Shown here one piece after another: positions 45,223 to 62,112 of a stretch of DNA of 64,000 nucleotides (position 1 is its first letter; each line of letters opens with the position of its first letter). The notes beneath the pieces are model-generated. The model did not search any database and was not told the DNA's origin. It saw nothing but the letters and a program-made list of their open reading frames with translations. This DNA is from Scyliorhinus canicula (Eukaryota). The translations under genes were made by a program, and so were the position numbers. Where the stretch lies: assembly GCF_902713615.1 (NCBI RefSeq), contig NW_024055728.1, forward strand, positions 4,057,978 to 4,121,977, in the 5' to 3' direction.

Positions 45223-45631
45223 GAGTAATCACAACAAAAGCGGAGGCATGTTCCAGCAGCTGGTATAAAGCACCAAGAAAGAAATGCTTAAATTCCACAC
45301 ACTTGGAATATGCCCTCTGGAGAAGTTACTCTTGAAACAGCGAATCAACCAAGCCATATGTGGACTGTATTGTCCCAGTTGTGAGGTAACGCAGAAACTC
45401 TTGTGTTCAATGGTATCCTTCCTGGAGGCAATAACAAAACATGAATTCACTGTTGTGTGTTAGAATATTACTATTGAGTTTGGCAAGGTGTTTTTCTGTC
45501 CTCTGGAACTTTTACTAAAATGCTAAATGCGTCCTCAGAATGAGGAGCACTTCTCGGTTCTATTACGGGGTTTTGCCTAACCCCGTACTCGGAGGCGAAG
45601 AAATTATACTGAACTTCTTCATAGAAAGTGT

Positions 45632-46045
45632 CATACAGATAGACTCAAACATGCGTACATAGACAGAAGCACGCGCACACGAATGCACACATTTACATAC
45701 AGAAGCATACACATATATACACAACAGGTGTGCAGACAAAACAGGTACATGCACGTACACAAACACAGAGACGCACACATAGCACACATCACACACAGAA
45801 ACACACGTATACATCTACACACACATTCACACCCATATTCAACACGATCATCTACACACATATACACAGAAACATACGCACACAGAACATATACCACACA
45901 CATATGCACCCACATATAGTACACACATACACACATACAACATGCTCATACACATACATACCCACCCACGCATCACACACACACACAGAACAGTCATACA
46001 CACACGTATATGTGTGTGTGTGTGTGTGTGTTTGTACATACATAT
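45632..46045. repeat. Degenerate (CA)n tract switching to pure (TG)n
   Basis: Direct inspection. Confidence 0.85.
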
Positions 46046-46589
46046 ATTGATGGCTACACGCGCAAATAGAACCAATACCTGAAGGGAGCATTATGAAAAC
46101 CTGAGCACTGAGTAAACGTAATGACGAGGTGCTGAACTACCCAATTGCGCTTGAACTGGAAATGGAGTCGACATTGACCAGTAGGACAATGTCATTTCAT
46201 GCAATCTGGAAACTGACTTCCCATATTGAAAACGGACCTTCACTCTTTCTCGTGACCAACAGTACAGTTAAATAAAAGCAAATCCTCATCTAACTTCTGC
46301 AGACACTTCGGCAGCAACGTTGTTCTGACATCACAGGAATTGCATGTGTTCCACTTTGCGGCTGAATGCCACTTTTTGCATGGGCAAGTTGGGTGGTCAA
46401 TAGATTGTCGGCTAGCCAATCACACATCAATTCCCTGACGTATATGCCGCTTGGGTAATTGAACGTCACCTCATCTCGCACCTGAATGGTCGACACATTC
46501 TGAGATATTGAGCATTAGTTATTAGCCTCATCATCCGTTCTGCTTCAGACTTTGTCATGTCTGTTGGCAAGCCCTATATGAATCAAATT

Positions 46590-48047: not shown

Positions 48048-49400
48048 GAGCGGCACAGTCTCAAATTGGGTTAGCACTGCTGCCTCACTGTGCTGGTTTC
48101 AATTCCCACTCGAGGTAAATATGTGGGTTTTGCGCTTCGGGCCGTATTCTCCGGGTGCCCGGTTACCACCAACAGCCCACAACTGTGCAGGTGAGGTGGA
48201 CTTGCCATATATTTTTTTTGAAACAGTTAAAAATATATATATCAGGCCGAACTGTAAAAACACTAATTTTGTATTGGAGAACCAGGGTACCCTACCCTCA
48301 GTACCAACATACGGGAAGGTGGGGGTGAGGTAGATTACTCTGATTATTTAAACAGTTCTCAACACAGTTCTACAAAGAAAAATAAAACGGTGCAAACTCT
48401 AAACTTTGCTCTGAAGAGACCAGATACGCTCGCCCGTGCACCAAGCGAATGGAAAGACAGGGGTCTGGTGGGGCGAGAGGGGCAAGGAGGGTGGTGGAGA
48501 GGGGCCAATAGGACACTGCCTGAACTGTCTACCGAGGCAGAAAAACAAAATAATTTATGATGTGCCAGACTCCGGGAGTAGGGCAGCTGAATTGCCACTT
48601 TGTGCTGAAAGAAGTGCAGGGTAGTTGGATTGGCAATGCTAAATTGACAATTTTGTGTCCCACGATGTGCGGGTTAGTTGTTTTGGCCATATATTTTTTA
48701 TTAAAAGAGTAAAAAATATATACAAGGCCAAACGGTACAAACAATAATTTTGTGTTGGAGAAAGAGGGTACCCTCCCCTCAGTACCAACGTACGGAGAGG
48801 GGGGGTCTCTGATTATTAATACAGTCCACAACACATGTCCACAAAAACAAATGGTACACGCACTAAACTTTGCGCTCGAGAGACCAGATACCCTCGCCTC
48901 TGCACCAACAGAAGGGAAAGGAAGGGGGTGTGGTGGGGAGAGGAGAAGGGCGGGTGCTTGGTGATTGAGTGTATCGGGGTATTGGTGGCGTGGGATGGGG
49001 GCGAATAGCACACTGCCTGCACTACTTACGGAGGCAGAAAAAGAAAGGAACCTTGAATTAATATGTTCCAGATTCTGGGAATCCCCCAGACGGTAATTGG
49101 ATCGGCCGTGCTAAATTGTGCTTTTAGTCTCCCCCATATGCGTGTTTGTTGGATTGGCGATGCTACATTGCCCCTGAGTGTCCCAGGATGTGCATTTGAG
49201 GTGGATTGGCCATGGTAATATGGCCCTTTGCGTCGGAAGATGTGCAAGTTAGGTGGAGTGGCCATGCTAAATTGTCCCTTAGTGCCTCGAGGCGTGCAGG
49301 TTAGCTGGTTACGCTGGGGAAGTGGGTCTAGGTAGGTGCTCTTTCAGAATGTCAGTGCACTCTCGATTGAACGTATGGCTTTAGCATGCACGGTAGGTGT
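48048..49400 (+). mobile_element. SINE with tandemly expanded internal ~52-bp unit and two ~370-400-bp minus-strand retroelement 3' ends inserted (48209-48577, 48691-49090)
   Basis: Repeated ggattggccatgctaaattg...gatgtgc units; both inserts start right after GCCAT with a T-rich run and are homologous to each other. Confidence 0.75.
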
Positions 49401-49560
49401 AGGTTCCAACCATGAACCAGGGATGAAGGTCAGTAGGGCATTGCCTTGGGTGGTCGGCTGTCGGTCTGTGTTGGACATTCTGCATGGCTGGATGCTATTT
49501 CTTATTTGTCTACACATTACTGACTTTGTAGAGAACAGCAGAATAACTTCATAGCCGTAC

Positions 49561-49671
49561 CTTTTTGTGATAAGTCATTCACTTTGTGTTCAACGATGAT
49601 TAGCACAATAACAACGAGCAACAATGCACTCAGGCAATGCCTCACCAAGGGCACCGAGTTGGGAGGGATGT
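49561..49671 (-). CDS. Transmembrane exon of LRC-like Ig receptor: (D)IPPNSVPLVRHCLSALLLVVIVLIIVEHKVNDLSQK(G)
   Basis: Acceptor ctttttattatcctttcatag|, donor AAG|gtacgg, 111 nt phase 1-1, hydrophobic segment with N-terminal Arg and closing Glu. Confidence 0.8.
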
Positions 49672-50059
49672 CTATGAAAGGATAATAAAAAGGGTTTAGT
49701 ATTTCGTTTGTCCCAGCCATCCCTGCACAATGGGAGTAACTCGGACACATCGATTCCCTCATCTATTGCAGGCTTGTAAGGCTGCTGACAGCTGAACTGT
49801 GTGAAAAACAAGTGGTGCACCGACGTGAATAGTGTCACACTCAACGTGGCCCAACGCACGGTTCAAGGGTGCAGGTTTATTAGCTGGATATCAGTATCGG
49901 GAAGCTTTGGAAGTGACCACTGGATTTGTGACAGAATGAAATCTGGGCAAAGGAATGCTCAGGAACGTTAGTTAGTATTAGTATTTCTAAAAATGTCTTT
50001 CCAAATGAACTTCCTTCTTTCTTTCAGCAATTGTCGATGTAAAACACAGAACATGACTG

Positions 50060-50345
50060 GGATTAGGGATGCTCCATCCTTTCACACTGGTGGGATTTCC
50101 GGTGCACCGGAAGCGCTCCCATGCCCAGGGATTTTGCCAACGGTGTGGGGCTGCCCACTTTATCCGGCTGGCGAGACGGGGAATCCTCCTGCCGGCTCGC
50201 ATGCGGCGTGCAGGAAAAATCGATGCAGCGGGACAGAGAACCCGGCCCGCTTGGGAACCGGCCATTTGCGTCTTTCTCAACCGCGGTGTGGGCTGACTGC
50301 AATGGAAAAATCTCAGTGACTGGCGGTGGGATGAGAGAATCCTCC
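50060..50345. mobile_element. Probable non-autonomous MITE-like element
   Basis: GC-rich insert with degenerate inverted ends (gggatgctccatcc ... gggatgagagaatcc). Confidence 0.4.
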
Positions 50346-51015
50346 AGCGAACAGCGCGCCGCCGCGAAACACGTGTCTGCGGAAGAAGAAAATCCCCTGT
50401 GATAATAACAACGATGAAAATCTGTAAAATGTATCTGTACCAAATATGGTTCGACCAATCAAGTTGCGTTTTGAACTCAAGCGCATTTCATTAAATAGCT
50501 GAAAAATAATACGGATCAATTTTGAGTTAATCAATACCTGCAGCTCACAGACATGCCCCTTCAATTCAATGGGCACTGCACATATATGTATGCCGATGTT
50601 GCGATTTCAAATGCTTATTTAAAACAATATCTGTTACATTAAATCTCAGATGTCGTTGGGTCTTCCTCGAAGAATAATTGCAATTCTACCACTGTGATTT
50701 TTCTCTTAAACCTGGTTTTAACTCTGGTCCACACTATCCCGGGAAAGCTTTGTTTTGTCACTGTTGGAAAACTACTCGCCTTCCCCCTGGTCCCGAGAGG
50801 AGCAAAGACGACCAGGTCATCAAGACAACAGACATTTCCATTGTTATAGATTGGACAGTATTTTCAAAGGCAGGTCCGAGCGTTGCGCTCAATCGGTATA
50901 GAAACACTTACAGTTGTTGGATGATGCATTTAATGCAGTGTAAAATTGGGCTGTATTGCTCTTCGACCTTAATTTGGAATATTACGTTACCGTTTCCAAT
51001 ACCTCACTTGTTTAC

Positions 51016-51039
51016 CAGTAATCTGGTGGGATTGCGCAT
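51016..51039 (-). CDS. Candidate 24-nt stalk mini-exon (D)AQSHQIT of the Ig receptor
   Basis: atttcag|ATGCG...ACTG|gtaaac, frame-preserving phase 1-1; weak pyrimidine tract. Confidence 0.35.
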
Positions 51040-51399
51040 CTGAAATCGATATCATTTCTGCCTCACTCACTGACGTGCCTGCAGTAATCTAGCTGCTTTG
51101 TTATCGCATCAAAGAATTATTCCGGCATTAATTAAGAACATTTTGCCCATCGTCTCGACAACGGCCCCGTGAATGAGAACCATCACATTGTGCATTTCCC
51201 CTGCCCCTTCCCCGCACATCTGTGTATTGCTTCTATGGGTAACGCCATCCAGTGGCCTCCTGAGTGCTTCGATTGAAACTGCCACACCGACACTTTGAGG
51301 CAGTGCATTGCAGAACCCGAACTTTGAGAATGTTGTGTTTCAGAATCATTTTGTCTGCGATTCGACAGATAATCTGCTCTCGTTCGTTGTGTGAGCTAC

Positions 51400-52100
51400 A
51401 CCTGGGCGAAGCATTGGTATTCTCGTATAACAGTAGTTGAACGTAAGCGCCCAGGTACAGCGGGCGATAAAGAAGTCAAATGGTATGTCTGCCTTCATAG
51501 TGACATAATTTGAGTACAGGAATAGGGATGTTTTACTGCAATCATATAGAGCATTGGTGAGGCCACACTTGGAGCATTCTGCGCAATGCTGGTGCCTTTA
51601 TCTGAGGGAAAATGTCATTGCTATCGAGCGAGTGCGCGACTGTTTACTTGGGTGATTCCTGGGATGATAGATGGGGAGGGATTAAGTTGCTTGGTATTAT
51701 ATTGATTGGCGTTAGGAAGATTGAAGGGGTATTATAGAAACAGAAAATGATAAAGACGAGACAGGGTAGAATCAGAATCAGTGGTCCAGTTGGAGGGCAG
51801 CCCAAAACTGATGGGCCACAGTTTGAGGATACAGATTTATATCTCAGCAGAAATATGTTTCCCGAGAGCTTGATAAATCTGTGGAATTCACTACCAAGGG
51901 AAGTATTTGAGGCGAAAACGTTGTGTTATTTCAAGAAGGAATTTGAAAGAGCACTTGGGACAAAAGGGATCAAGCATTCTGGAATGAAGGTGGTATCAGG
52001 ACATGCCATTTATGATCAACCATGATCGTAGTGAAAGATGGACCAGGTTCAAAGGGCCGAATGACCTCCACCTTCAACTGTTTGATATGTATATTTCTGT
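51400..52100 (+). mobile_element. Old CR1 3' part
   Basis: YRALVRPHLEH..., INLWNSLPREVFEAK. Confidence 0.75.
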
Positions 52101-52149
52101 GTATAATTATCGGCTCTGTCCAGCCACATTCTCATATTGTGCACATGCG

Positions 52150-52730
52150 TCAAGTCTCCTCTTGGACAGTTTTCTCCAAATGACCCTCCAATCTAACCTC
52201 ATAACTGACGTTTCTCATCCCTGGAACCATTCTTGTGAACCCCTTCTGCATTCCCTGAACCACAACATTTAGAATTGAACACAGTACTCCACCTGAGGTC
52301 AAACTGGTGTATTATATCAGTTCTGCATAACTCACTTGCGCTTGCACTCTACGCCGCTCGTAATAAAGCCCAGAATACTGTACTCTAAATTATATTTTCA
52401 CTCAACATTTCCTGCTAATCTCACTGATCAGTACACTTATGCACCCAAGTCAATTTGCTCCTGCACAACCTCAAAAATTGCAGCGTATGTCGTCTGCCCA
52501 TATGCTGGCAGCCGAAATACACGAATCTGCATCCCAATTGGAATTCGCCCCCCACCTATCTATTCACGAAACTAAGTTGTCAGTGTACGTTTCAGACTCT
52601 GGTCTGTCCTCCTCCCAATTTTCAATGATTCAGCGTTCTGCACCATTCATTTCGCTTAGAAATCCTTCCCCCTGAACAGCAATCAAGTCTGTCACAATAC
52701 ATAAATAAAGCAATCCTTCCAGAAACATTA
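52150..52730 (-). mobile_element. Old CR1 fragment
   Basis: Reverse strand PQVEYCVQF...RFTRMVPGM. Confidence 0.65.
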
Positions 52731-52989
52731 TTTGACCTTTAACTCTCTGATTTTCCAGATCACTGTGTCGTCGAATATTTGGAGTTCCCTGTTTAAGTTT
52801 TCATTTCCTGACTGTCACCCATAATTTGATTCGCGGCATACCATTTTTCAGAAGTTGTAAGAGCCAGCTCAGGGTAAGTTTCCCTGGATAGGGATGTTGC
52901 CCTTCTATCCGTTTCAGCAGTTTTATAAATGTAATCTAAAGTACAGAGTCCTGCTAAACTGGCAAATGTTCAATCGTTTATATACTTGC

Positions 52990-53158
52990 GGGGGCAGTAG
53001 ACTGGGCTAAATGGCTGGCTTTTAAAGCAGACAAAGGCAGCCCAGCAGCACGGTTCAATTCCCGAACAGGCGCCGGAATCTGGCGACTAGGGGCGTTACG
53101 CAGTAACTTCATTTGAAGCCGACTTGTGACAATAAGCGATTTTGATTTCATTTCATTT
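52990..53158 (+). mobile_element. Short SINE (second family)
   Basis: GGTTCAATTCCC B box, ...acttgtgacaataagcgattttgatttcatttcattt tail. Confidence 0.8.
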
Positions 53159-53790
53159 CCAATGTTTCAACAGTGTCCAATAGTTTTAACTATTGTTATG
53201 TGAAGGATAAATTGGTTTAACGACGGAAAAATTGCCGAACGTCGATTCAATTCAAAATAACTACTGTTTATATATTGTGGCCGATTCAACGAATGTATTC
53301 AACGCTGAAAATGAAATGATAATTTTCATCTCTCCCCTTGAGCAGCGTAGAATATATGCATCCAGTCATTACCGACAATGAACCCTACCTTCAATACAAT
53401 GAGGGGACGACTCAATTTCGGACAGGGGAGGACTTTGAATACAGAAATTGCCTGAAAGTTAGCGGCATCTAAATTGAAAAACTACAACACACGTTACAAC
53501 GTTTGGTATGAGTTGGCCATACTGCATTGTTGGTAGCCATGCATGTGACTTTAATTTGAACTTCCCCCCCCCCCCTTTTTAACGATGCCATCATTATTTG
53601 AAGATGAAAGATGAGGGAGTGGTTGATACTGGCATTTAAAGATGCATGGAAACGATAAGGCCACACAGTCGACCACCCGCACTTGTTCCTTGCAGATATT
53701 CACTAAATGTTAGATCATTTAAAAACTAAATTAGTCTTCTCTTTGACTACAGTCGAAACAATAGAAATACTTTGAGATAAAGAAACTTGC

Positions 53791-54123
53791 CTGGCATTGA
53801 CATATCCAGTTCCTGATCATTCTCAGTCACCACAACATCTTTGCTCCATGGAGAATCCGTCCAATTTCCTCCAACATGTGTCTGATACCGGCAGCCGTAA
53901 CTTCCCAGATAATCATTTCCCGTAACGTTGACTTTGAAGGTCGCAGTTCGCTGATCGCCATTCATTTGATGAGATTGTATAGGTTCCATGCTCCGGTTTC
54001 TGTACAAGTGGAACATGCCCCCGGAGGAGCGAATGTCCCCATTGCATGAAATAAGAACAATTTCGCCACTTGAAGTCAGACCGACATTTTTGAATTTGTT
54101 GATAGTCGGTTGAGAAAGTCGAT
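53791..54123 (-). CDS. Ig domain 2 exon (membrane-proximal, C2-type, LRC-like)
   Basis: Acceptor ttttattttcctgttacag|; (D)RLSQPTI...GEIVLISC...FHLYRN...ATFKV...GSYGCRY...WTDSPWSKDVVVT...SMP; 333 nt phase 1-1 using donor CAG|gcaagt. Confidence 0.85.
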
Positions 54124-54206
54124 CTGTAACAGGAAAATAAAAATCAGAAACTTTTTGAAGCACAATGACAAATAAAAAATCTTGCGTGCAGACAATGTTG
54201 ATGAAT

Positions 54207-55055: not shown

Positions 55056-55346
55056 CTCCAATATTTATCGGTATGGGATGGCTCAAATTTGACCTCCTCC
55101 AGCCTTTTTCGCTCCAATCCAAGCATTCACAACTGTAGATTCCTCCAATGGCCACGGTGTCGTTATATTCAAGGTACGTCCTGCACTGCCGTTTGTCATA
55201 ATCCCTTCGATTTGTTGGATTCCGGTTGTGATAATATTGGATCCTTACGGCAGGACATTGACAACGACAATTCAAAGTTATATTCTCTCCGGTAAAAAAG
55301 TGTCCGTACGACGGAAACGAAGTTAAGTCTGGCAGCGGTAAATCAA
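55056..55346 (-). CDS. Ig domain 1 exon (membrane-distal, Cys-rich)
   Basis: Acceptor ctgtttgacttcag|; DLPLPDLT...GENITLNCRCQCP...GGIYSCEC...SNLSHPIPINIG; donor GAG|gtagc; 291 nt phase 1-1. Confidence 0.85.
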
Positions 55347-56654: not shown

Positions 56655-56687
56655 ATATGTCCATTCCGAGAAGCCAGCCGAAATAAA
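56655..56687 (-). CDS. 33-nt leader (signal peptide part 2) mini-exon: xYFGWLLGMDI(F)
   Basis: Strong sites cttttcttttcag| and |gtgagt; phase 1-1; joins in frame to the Ig1 exon. Confidence 0.7.
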
Positions 56688-57950: not shown

Positions 57951-59992
57951 GCACGTCACACTAAATCTAAATCTCAATCGAATCTACCACACCACCAATT
58001 ATCTTGCTGTTGCGAATATTCTGATCATTTGATCAACTGGGTAGGGAGATGGTTGGGTTGAGATGGTTGTTGGAAGTTGTGTCAATCTTGGAAAATTGGA
58101 AGGTAAGGTAACTAATTCGGTGTTAATCTAATGATAAATACTTCCATTGACATCAACCATACGACCATAAGACCATAAGACATAGGAGTGGAAGTAAGGC
58201 CATTCGGCCCATCGAGTCCACTCCGCCATTCAATCATGGCTGATGGGCATTTCAACTCCACCTCCCAGCATTCTCCCCGTAGCCCTTAATTCCTCGTGAC
58301 ATCAAGAATTTATCTATCTCTGCCTTGAAGCCATGTTGCGTCCCGGCCTCCACTGCACTCTGCGGCAATGAATTCCACAGGCCCACCACTCTCTGGCTGA
58401 AGAAATGTCTCCGCATTTTTGTTCTGAATTTACCCCCTCTAATTCTAATGATGTGCCCACGGGTCCTCGTCTCCTCGCCTAACGGAAACAGTTTATTTGC
58501 GTCCACCCTTTCTAAGCCATGTATTATCTTGTAAGTTTCTATTAGAACTCCCCTTAACCTTCTAAACTCCAATGAATACAATCCCAGGATCCTCAGCTGT
58601 TCCTCATATGTTAGACCCGCCATTCCAGGGATCATCCGTGTGTATCTCCGCTGGACACGCTCCAGTGCCAGTATATCCTTCTTGAGATGTGGGACCCAAA
58701 ACTGGACGCAGTACTCCAAATGGGGCCTAACCAGAGCCTTATAAAGGCTGAGTAGCACATCGCTGCTTTTATATTCCAACCCTCTTGAGATAAATGACAA
58801 CATTGCATTCGCTTTCTTAATCACGGATTCAACCTGCATGTTGACCTTTAAGGAATCCTCGACTAGCATTCCCAGATCCCTTTGTACTTTGGCATTATGA
58901 ATTTTTTCACCGTTTAGAAAGTAGTCTATGCTTGGACTCTTTTTTCCAAAGTGCAAGACCTCACATTTGCTCACGTTGAATTGCATCAGCCATTTCCTGC
59001 CCACTCTCCGAAACTGTCTAGATCCTTCTGCGGCCTCCCCACTTCCTCAGCACCACCTGCCTAACCACCTAACTTCGTATCATCGGCAAACTTCGCTAGA
59101 ATGCCCCCAGTCCCTTCATCCAGATCATTAATATATATGGCGAACAGCTGCGGCCCCAATACTGAACTCTCTGGGACACTGCTGGTCACCGGCTGCCATT
59201 CCGAAAAAGAACCTTTTATCCCAACTCTATGCCTTCTGTCAGACAGCCAATCCTCAACCCATGCCAGTAGCTCACCTCGAACACCATGGGCCCTCACCTT
59301 ACTCAGCAGCCTCCTGTGTGGCACCTTATCAAAGGACTTGTAAATCCAGATAGACCACATCCACTGGGTTTCCCTGGTCTAACCTACTTGTCACCTCCTC
59401 AAAGAATTCTAACAGGTTCGTCAGGCACGATCTCCCCTTACTAAATCCATGTTGACTTGTTCTAATCCGACCCTGCTCTTCCAAGAATTTAGAAATCTCA
59501 TCCTTAACGATCGATTCTAGAATTTTACCAACAACCGATGTTAGGCTAATTGGCCTATAATTTTCCATCTTTTGTCTTGATCCTTTCTTGAACAACGGGG
59601 TTACAACAGCGATCTTCCAATCGTACGGGACTTTCCCTGACTCCAGTGATTTTTGAAAGATCTCAACCAACGCTTCCGCTATTTCTTCAGCCACCTCCCT
59701 CAGAACTCTAGGACGTAGGCCATCTTGGCCAGGAGATTTGTCAATTTTAAGACCTTTTAGCTTTTTTTAGCACCATCTCTTTTGTAATGGCAAACATACT
59801 CAACTCAGCCCCCTGACCCTTTATAATTTTTGGGATATTACTCATGTCTTCCACTGTGAAGACAGACGCACAGTACTTATTAAGTTCTCCAGCCATTTCC
59901 TCGTCTCTTATGTATTGAAATAAACTTTTACTATCATTTCTTATATTATTGGTTAGCGTGCCTCCATATTTGATCCTCTCCTTCCTTAGTTG

Positions 59993-60322
59993 TAGAACAT
60001 AGAACATCGAACAGTACAGCACAGAACAGGCCCTTCGGCCCTCGATGTTGTGCCGAGCAACGATCACCCCACTTAAACCCACGTAACCCGTAACCCAACA
60101 ATCCCCCCATTAACCTTACACTACGGGCAATTTAGCATGGCCAATCCACCTAACCCGCACATCTTTGGACTCTGGGAGGAAACTGGAGCACCCGGAGGAA
60201 ACCCACGCACACACGGGGAGGACGTGCAGACTCCACACAGACAGTGACCCAGCCGGGAATCGAACCTGGGACCCTGGAGCTGTGAAGCATTGATGCTAAC
60301 CACCATGCTACCGTGAGGCCCC
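59993..60322 (-). mobile_element. Young HE1-type SINE inserted in CR1 ORF2
   Basis: Full head gggcctcacggtagcatggtgg and (TTCTATG)n tail. Confidence 0.95.
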
Positions 60323-62112
60323 ATTGTCTCTTTGTTAACCTCTGTTTGTTTTCGTAGCCTTCCCAATCTTCTGTTTTCCCAGTGCTTTTGGCATCTTTAT
60401 TGTATCACTCTTTTTCTTTGATACATTTCCTGACCTCCTTTGTCAGCAATGGCTGTCTAATCCCTCCCTGGATAATCTTTCTTTTCATGGGGATGAACCT
60501 CTATACAGTGTCCTCAATTATGCATACAAACTCCTGCCATTTTTGCTCTACTGTCTTCCCCACTACGGTCTGCTTCCAGTCGATCTTCGCCAGTTCCTCT
60601 CTCATGCCCTCGTAATTATTTAACTGTAACGCCATTACATCCGATTTTGCCTTCTCTCTTTCAAACTGCAGATTGAACTCAACCATATTATGATCGCTGC
60701 TTCCTAAGTGTTCCCTTACTTTAAGATCTTTTATAAAGTCTGGTTCATTACATAGCACTAGGTCCAGAATAGCCTGCTCCCTTGTGGGCTCCATGACAAG
60801 CTGTTCCAAAAAGCCATCTTGTAAGCATTCCATGAATTCATTTTCTTTGGATCCACTGGCTACGTTATTTACCCAATCCACCTACATATTGAAGTCCCCC
60901 ATGATCACCGTGACTTTGCCTTTCTGACATGCCTTTTCTATTTCCCGGTACATGTTGCGCCCCTGGTCCTGACCACTGTTAGGAGGTCTGTACATTACTC
61001 ACATTATGGTTTTTTTTGCCTTTGTAGTTCCTCAATTCTACCCACACAGACTCCACATCATCCGACCCTATGTAGTTTAGTGCCATAGATTTAATTTTGT
61101 TCTTAACCAACAAGGCAACCCCACCCCCTAGGCCCACCTCCCTGTCTTTTCGATAGGTTGTATATCCTTGGATGTTTAACTGCCAGTCCTGAACCCCCTG
61201 CAGCCATGTCTCTGTGATGCCTGCCACCTCATAATCATTCACGATGATCTGTGCCATTAGTTCGTCTACTTTGTTACAAATGCTACGAGCATTCAGGTAA
61301 GGTGCCTTAATGCTAACTTTCTTATCATTACAGATATTGGAAGTCCTAAGATGTCCAAAGTTATCCTTCCTTTTTGTTGCATTCCTAGTCTGCCTCAAGC
61401 TTAAATCCAGCTGCCTACATGTTATCCTTCTGCGTATCTTGCCATTTAACTCCATGCCCCCTGTCGCTTTCACTTTCCCTTCCCCCCAACTCTGAAATTT
61501 AATGTCCTACTGACCACCCTATTTTTCCTCTTCGCTAGAGCACTGGTTCCAGATCAGTTCAGGTGGAGACCGTCCCAACGGTACAGATCCCACCGGTTCC
61601 AAAACTGATGCCAATGTCCCATGAAGTGGAACCCCTCTTTCCCACCACAATCCCTTAGCCACGTGTTTACTTCCCTAATTGTCTTATCCCTATGCCAATT
61701 GACACGTGGCTCGGGCAGTAATCCGGAGATTATGACCCTTGAGGACCTGTGTTTCAATTTTCTTCCTAGTGCTTGATAGTCCCCGAACAGATCCTCCACC
61801 CTAGCTTTACCTATGTTGTTAGTCCCAACGTGGACCATAACAACTGGATACTCCCCCTCCCGCTCCAATATCCTTTCAAGCCGGCCAGAGATGCACCCTG
61901 GCACCGGGCAGGCAACACACCATGCGAGTCTCCCGATCCGTCTTGCATAGGATACTATCTGTCCCCCTAATTATAGAATCCCCTATAACAACTACTTGTC
62001 TTTTTTACTCCCCCTTCTTGAATGGCCTTCTGTACCATGGTACCGTGGTCAGCTGGCTCATCCTGTCCAGAGCCCTTTTCTTCATCCATACAGGGAGCAA
62101 GAGTCTCATACC

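Follow-up and report, generated by a model that had tools for sequence, protein, structure and literature searches.

A 111-nt exon on the minus strand of a Scyliorhinus canicula genomic stretch (64,000 nucleotides of contig NW_024055728.1, referred to here as the window) encodes the transmembrane (TM) segment of a receptor with two immunoglobulin (Ig) domains. It is a real exon, spliced straight onto the second Ig exon of the gene LOC119960732 through a GC-AG intron. The encoded helix carries an Arg at its outer end and a Glu behind exactly 16 intervening residues, and we consider it probable that the exon belongs to an LRC-type receptor whose R-x16-E helix pairs, through the Arg, with an ITAM adaptor, FcR gamma being the likely one. 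The features of the gene found in the window are collected in Table 1.

Table 1. Features of the receptor gene LOC119960732 in the window, listed in the direction of the gene. P0001 is the protein of the public NCBI model; X1, X2 and X14 are public runs whose contigs were mapped.
Feature	Positions	Strand	Description and basis
Second signal-peptide exon	56655..56687	minus	33 nt, phase 1-1, ...YFGWLLGMDI; matches P0001 residues 12-22
Ig domain 1 (Ig1) exon	55056..55346	minus	291 nt, phase 1-1; 100% identity to P0001
Ig domain 2 (Ig2) exon	53791..54123	minus	333 nt, phase 1-1; 100% identity to P0001 residues 120-229; contigs X1, X2, X14
GC-AG intron	49672..53790	minus	4,119 nt; donor CCAG/gcaagt, AG acceptor; contig joint
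Transmembrane exon	49561..49671	minus	111 nt, phase 1-1; translation, splice sites and contigs
Arg codon	49640..49642	minus	extracellular side, residue 3 of the 19-residue hydrophobic stretch; translation
Glu codon	49589..49591	minus	17 residues past the Arg, cytoplasmic end of the helix; translation
Donor past the TM exon	49559..49560	minus	GT; AAAAAG/gtacgg

The plus-strand frames at 49561-49671 are interrupted by many stops, and the coding feature lies on the minus strand, where the exon translates as D-IPPNSVPLV-R-HCLSALLLVVIVLIIV-E-HKVNDLSQK. The product consists of a short stalk, the helix LVRHCLSALLLVVIVLIIV, the pair E-H and 8 residues that begin the cytoplasmic part. A pyrimidine-rich acceptor (...tttcatag/AC, with the AG at 49673-49672) precedes the exon, which is in phase 1 at both ends, as is usual for Ig-superfamily genes. 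A preliminary description of this DNA, made from the letters alone, had reported an Arg, exactly 16 residues and a Glu, a Pro in place of the Asn of the NxxR motif, and a good donor (AAG/gtacgg) at the exon end. All three are borne out by the minus-strand reading: the spacing is as described, Pro stands at -3 from the Arg, and the GT lies at 49560-49559.

The pattern of an Arg, 16 mostly hydrophobic residues and a Glu or Asp is found once when the 64-kb window is translated in all six frames. Since mononucleotide shuffles contain it 0.24 times per window on average, the bare pattern is weak evidence when taken alone; it is raised above chance by the splice joint, by its recurrence in relatives and by the in-register match to a tetrapod profile, all of which are described below. 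A Pfam search with the TM peptide gave no match.

The helix class in question is the NxxR, or TM1, helix; among LRC elements, Guselnikov and Taranin regard it as the most conserved (PMC6557307). Association with FcR gamma requires its Arg, an Asn stands ahead of the Arg, a DYT motif lies upstream, and the C-terminal end carries unusual acidic residues (PMC6557307). The helix is present in LILRA, PIR-A, NKp46, GPVI, OSCAR and FcalphaRI and in Xenopus FCRL/SLAM receptors (PMC6557307, PMC2413239), and in transfected cells FcR gamma associates with the Xenopus receptors that carry it (PMC2413239; also PMC4536121).

For comparison, we used five tetrapod LRC helices that were found through the Ig2 domain alone, namely those of bat LILRA6 (P0084), a tortoise A1BG-like protein (P0073), a lizard IGSF1-like protein (P0107), a TARM1-like protein (P0135) and a sea-turtle protein (P0141). 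All five have the form N-x-x-R-x16-E. Against an HMM of these helices the catshark TM exon scores 14.9 bits, with Arg aligned on Arg and Glu on Glu (profile position 28), and the shark proteins P0046, P0104 and P0070 score 18.4, 15.5 and 12.0 bits. The controls remain far lower, at 4.8 bits for the best of 220 composition-matched shuffles of shark segments and 4.7 bits for the highest-scoring helix from the rest of the family that is uncharged or has Arg only at its flank. The likeness to the FcRgamma-coupling helix class claimed in the preliminary description is thus upheld as an in-register profile match.

The likeness extends to several separate features. The Arg is located near the outer (N-terminal) end of the helix, 16 residues follow it, and a negatively charged residue closes the C-terminal end, with Glu at +17 as in the five tetrapod proteins; moreover, in both groups the segment forms a separate short exon past the last Ig exon and is found on the short-tailed members of paired families. 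The catshark helix differs from the tetrapod one in having no Asn at -3 (Pro here, and A, T, S, V or I in ten other elasmobranch helices), no DYT-like motif ahead of the helix, and a His directly after the Arg. Its acidic residue is also followed by His, whereas the tetrapod comparison helices have Ala, and the human GPVI and FcalphaRI strings quoted in the preliminary description show Asp/Asn-Trp at the acid end of the helix. Three of the relatives (P0104, P0025 and P0069) have Q-Y-L-T, which places a Tyr at -7 like that of the tetrapod proteins. From this alignment we infer that the shark helix corresponds, in elasmobranchs, to the NxxR (TM1) helix of tetrapods, in a version without the Asn.

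The extracellular part was compared at the level of both sequence and fold. Single-domain searches gave weak matches to LILRB4, CHIR-AB1, OSCAR and FCRL5. A profile of 13 shark ectodomains (A1), searched against the PDB, matches PIR-B (1e-31), FCRL5 (6e-26), LILRB2 (8e-20) and KIR3DL1 (6e-19), as well as NKp46 and, across both domains, OSCAR (7e-11). With the AlphaFold model of the ectodomain (pLDDT 87.3), Foldseek returned human OSCAR first (E 9e-12, 25-26% identity), and LILRB4, NKp46, PIR-B, LILRA5 and KIR2DS2 next. The profile and fold matches therefore place the ectodomain in the LRC type, with the usual FCRL kinship; the whole receptor is predicted to be a two-Ig, LRC-type, OSCAR/LILR-like cell-surface protein. 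Human OSCAR (PDB 5eiq, 5cj8) shares with the catshark receptor the two C2-type Ig domains and is the best fold match at about 25% identity, a likeness of fold from which neither orthology nor the collagen ligand can be inferred. OSCAR itself has an NxxR helix and couples to FcR gamma (PMC6557307).

An exhaustive HMMER search with Ig2 yielded 217 representatives, among which the two-Ig elasmobranch members form two classes. Members of the first have an uncharged helix and a long tail with ITIM-like motifs (P0024, P0031, P0036, P0042, P0064, P0068, P0072 and P0076). Those of the second have a short tail and a polar helix of the form [R/H/Q]-x16-[E/D/Q]-H. Carcharodon P0070/P0169 reads R-H...E-H, as does the catshark gene. 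The sawshark Pristiophorus has R...E in P0104 and R...Q in P0025/P0151; Heterodontus has R...E in P0046, followed by Tyr instead of His, and Q...D and Q...E in P0050 and P0069, respectively. Chiloscyllium P0090/P0170 reads H...E, and the Scyliorhinus paralogue P0138 reads H...D. Arg helices with other endings are present in Mustelus P0044 and in the sawfish Pristis P0123.

Within the short-tail class the spacing of the two polar columns is invariant, and the same spacing is seen in relatives from six other elasmobranch species. The catshark TM exon aligns to the helices of six shark relatives with E values of about 1e-5 to 1e-4. The occupants of the two columns are less constant: unlike the tetrapod NxxR helix, the shark helices vary in the Arg column, which is His (P0090, P0138) or Gln (P0050, P0069) in 4 of 11 elasmobranch representatives, and the Glu column is Gln in P0025. 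Because the relatives show R, H or Q in the one column and E or Q in the other, neither charge is indispensable to the module. In the databases, the family members bear automatic names such as "TARM1-like", "OSCAR", "LILRB3" and "IGSF1-like"; our literature search found no paper on this shark family, the members of which already receive LRC names from database pipelines. The helix and tail of P0104, used as query in a word-indexed protein search, matched P0104 alone. As a separate observation, the ray protein P0123 (Pristis pectinata) combines an Arg at the helix start with a longer tail that ends in a tyrosine motif (...ATYAEV...), and fits neither class.

In the sawshark Pristiophorus japonicus, the ITIM-bearing P0024 and the Arg-helix protein P0151 are identical at 198 of 211 ectodomain residues (94%), which is the signature of paired receptors. 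The preliminary description had suggested looking among paralogues for paired activating and inhibitory members, and for the family such pairing is borne out by the two helix classes and by this sawshark pair. P0151 ("TARM1-like") and P0024 ("LILRB3-like") belong to the same family as the catshark receptor, with 43% and 41% identity to its ectodomain. P0151 has the helix type and the exon size of the catshark gene, but has Gln for Glu and a known tail exon. As for the catshark gene itself, its closest uncharged-helix relative in the catshark, P0041, is 47% identical and is modelled without ITIMs; no near-identical inhibitory twin of the gene was seen.

In the mechanism that we propose, the Arg, which lies close to the outer leaflet, would pair with the Asp that a dimeric ITAM adaptor carries in the membrane. 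FcR gamma would be the most likely partner and CD3 zeta a possible one. An activating signal of the Syk type would then follow the binding of a ligand, and the Glu at the inner end of the helix would be a part of the same conserved module. This putative association with an FcRgamma/CD3zeta-type chain through the Arg is suggested by homology together with the work on frog and mammalian receptors (PMC2413239, PMC6557307). It is weakened by the Asn(-3) that is missing in all shark members and by the replacement of the Arg with His or Gln in several of them, including P0138.

The alternative that survives best, although we judge it unlikely, is that there is no adaptor at all. The Arg would then lie at the membrane-water boundary, and the receptor would act through its own short tail or be a non-signalling or decoy protein, with soluble forms produced by skipping of the symmetrical TM exon. 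Such a reading would agree with the 4 of 11 related helices in which the Arg is replaced by His or Gln, and with the conserved tail exon common to the relatives, which might signal on its own. It would also agree with the predicted sawshark isoform P0153, which differs from P0151 in skipping precisely the TM exon while the tail exon is kept in frame, so that soluble forms of an Arg-helix receptor are possible. However, the positive-inside rule disfavours a basic residue at the outer face of a type I helix, and the paired architecture with ITIM counterparts likewise speaks against this reading. Receptors with an NxxR helix are often present at the surface without FcR gamma (PMC6557307), but the class with which the catshark helix aligns in register is one with proven adaptor coupling (PMC2413239).

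It is more doubtful still that an Asp-bearing adaptor is engaged but that this adaptor is a DAP12/DAP10-like chain, or CD3 zeta only, instead of FcR gamma. A lone membrane Arg does not specify its partner, as Ly49D/H and NKG2D use an Arg with DAP12/DAP10, and the catshark helix lacks the Asn that marks the FcR gamma-linked motif. Activating KIRs, for their part, carry their TM Lys in the middle of the helix. The KIR2DS/DAP12 system resembles the catshark case in that a short-tailed partner of an inhibitory receptor has a basic residue in its helix, but the residue is Lys and the KIR2DS helix is derived from that of the inhibitory KIRs (PMC6557307, PMC2413239). The catshark helix is in register with the FcR gamma-coupled NxxR class at both the Arg and the terminal Glu, whereas the KIR2DS helix, which couples to DAP12, shows no relationship to that class (PMC2413239) and the activating KIRs have a TM Lys (PMC6557307). 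We retain an FcR gamma-type chain as the probable partner of the catshark Arg.

The remaining alternatives concern the exon itself, and are weighed against the public contigs. Contigs of runs X1, X2 and X14 and the raw reads of X21 were mapped on 48131-54130. This interval contains a single clean joint, from 49671 to 53791, which skips 4,119 nt and is present in X2 and X14, two runs from two studies; its ends read CT..GC on the plus strand and hence GC-AG on the strand of the gene. In X2, the joint lies in a 732-nt contig (depth 10.3) that spans 107 nt of the TM exon, the whole of Ig2 and 290 nt more, about the length of the Ig1 exon (291 nt). In X14, it lies in a 195-nt contig with zero mismatches. 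The genome match of the X1 contig also ends exactly at 53791 and is followed by 6 unplaced letters. At the acceptor of the Ig2 exon, the X1 and X2 contigs depart from the genome and extend for another 216 and 290 nt. Joining of the Ig2 and TM exons creates an in-frame Asp codon at the junction. The preliminary description had made its reading depend on splicing of this exon to the Ig exons, and this is what the contigs of both studies contain.

Neither X2 nor X14, the runs that carry the joint, is recorded as RNA, and X21, a raw-read RNA run, has no reads on the gene (48131-54130). The Ig2 exon is present in several small, transcriptome-sized contig sets of Scyliorhinus canicula, and the sampled words of the TM exon were found only in four runs of one other study. 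The X2 sequence is a variant, with 6 differences from the genome in 107 nt of the TM exon (49565-49671) and 4 in Ig2 (53791-54125). All four Ig2 differences are synonymous. Three of the six TM-exon differences are a V-to-G change, an I-to-M change and a silent one, all away from the Arg and Glu codons, and the other three lie near the end of the contig. The X2 variant represents either a second allele or a very recent copy.

The public NCBI model for the locus (LOC119960732; 243 aa, P0001), which was found by a word-indexed search with Ig1, consists of a signal peptide, Ig1 and Ig2, followed by 14 residues that are read through the GC donor to a stop. The model is truncated and lacks the TM exon. 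Reading through the consensus GC donor (CCAG/gcaagt, window 53750-53790) is what makes a membrane receptor look like a secreted protein, and the GC-AG joint described above corrects this public model. It is very improbable that the secreted 243-aa protein is nonetheless the main product and the TM exon minor or spurious. Apart from the 14 read-through residues of P0001, this would be suggested by the RNA-like runs X1-X4, which contain Ig2 but 0 sampled TM-exon words; the missing words are, however, accounted for by the variant TM exon of X2. In addition, contig depth is zero across 53531-53730 in all runs mapped (X1, X2, X14 and X21), so that the read-through of the GC donor assumed in the model is not seen, and the contigs of X1, X2 and X14 stop matching the genome at 53791, those of X2 and X14 going on into the TM exon. 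That the stretch is a chance open reading frame and no exon, as the expectation per shuffled window given above might suggest, is scarcely credible: barring a genomic retrocopy of the joined form, the splice joint that the contigs of two studies place exactly at its boundary speaks against it, as does the homology to the helices of six shark proteins.

In LOC119960732, as in LRC-type Ig receptors, each Ig domain has its own exon, the introns are in phase 1, and the membrane segment is encoded separately (exons of 291, 333 and 111 nt, all phase 1-1). Exon 1 (MFKTLIFLPF) was not found in the 64-kb window, which contains no paralogues of the receptor gene and, near it, no other recognisable gene.

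Downstream of the TM exon, the preliminary description had considered further cytoplasmic exons past the donor possible, and at least one more is indicated: the X14 contig follows the genome to 49560, one base past the exon end, and then continues with 3 letters that do not occur at this point of the stretch, departing from the genome right at the end of the exon. Such a departure agrees with splicing at the GT donor to an exon whose first letter is G, which would complete a Gly codon like that of the relatives. A tblastn search of the window with the last 75 residues of six relatives gave nothing significant, an HMM of five tail exons, run over every open frame in the window, had a top score of 8.5 bits (E 0.35), likewise not significant, and no joint downstream of the TM exon was present in the mapped 1.4 kb. 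The catshark tail may comprise only a few codons, as in the paralogue P0138. The first 10 cytoplasmic residues of the catshark receptor contain no Tyr. In the short-tailed relatives, the tails are 10-35 residues long and without canonical ITIMs, and the conserved tail exon encodes about 20-25 residues.

The conserved NxxR helix has been traced only to amphibians and birds (PMC6557307), and in cartilaginous fish a survey of 2014 reported no genes for LRC, FcRL or FcR gamma (PMC4016189). A literature search on shark LRC receptors and ITAM adaptors returned nothing relevant beyond this negative survey. We tentatively put forward, with rather less than even confidence, that the FcR gamma-coupling LRC helix composed of an Arg, 16 residues and an acid was present in the jawed-vertebrate ancestor, and that the Asn, after which the tetrapod motif is named, was added later. 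This reading conflicts with the 2014 survey. If it is true, the presence in sharks and a ray of an expressed counterpart that matches in register, within a paired activating/inhibitory family, would move the signalling module to the root of the jawed vertebrates and separate its ancestral features, i.e. the Arg, the spacing and the terminal acid, from a later one, the Asn.

A more speculative idea is that the fixed spacing of 16 residues reflects two contacts with the adaptor, one between the Arg and the membrane Asp, and the other between the terminal Glu and basic residues past the adaptor helix. Such adaptors have an Asp in the membrane and basic residues after the helix. If the idea is correct, the R/H/Q and E/D/Q variants of sharks would be graded versions of this clamp. 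These natural variants also constitute ready-made mutants for asking why the helix is so conserved, a question that was left open in 2019 (PMC6557307).

The surroundings of the gene are rich in repeats. The intron upstream of the second signal-peptide exon contains, at 58252-61473 of the minus strand, a broken LINE-type retrotransposon whose reverse-transcriptase (PF00078) and endonuclease (PF03372) pieces lie in different frames. Interspersed repeats are located inside the gene at 52931-53330 and just downstream of it at 49131-49330; over these two intervals the summed contig depth rises to about 140,000, and the base differences are consistent across all of the runs. ARAGORN detected no tRNA-like head in the repeat-rich introns. 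Farther downstream of the TM exon, open frames on the minus strand at 48360-49110 contain diverged copies of one unit (...SVGAEARVSGLSSAKF... and ...SLGARASVSGLFRAKF...), which are probably tandem or clustered repeat copies. Finally, a long low-complexity tract rich in TG/CA extends over 45560-46100 and gives rise to pseudo-ORFs rich in Cys, Val, His and Thr on both strands.
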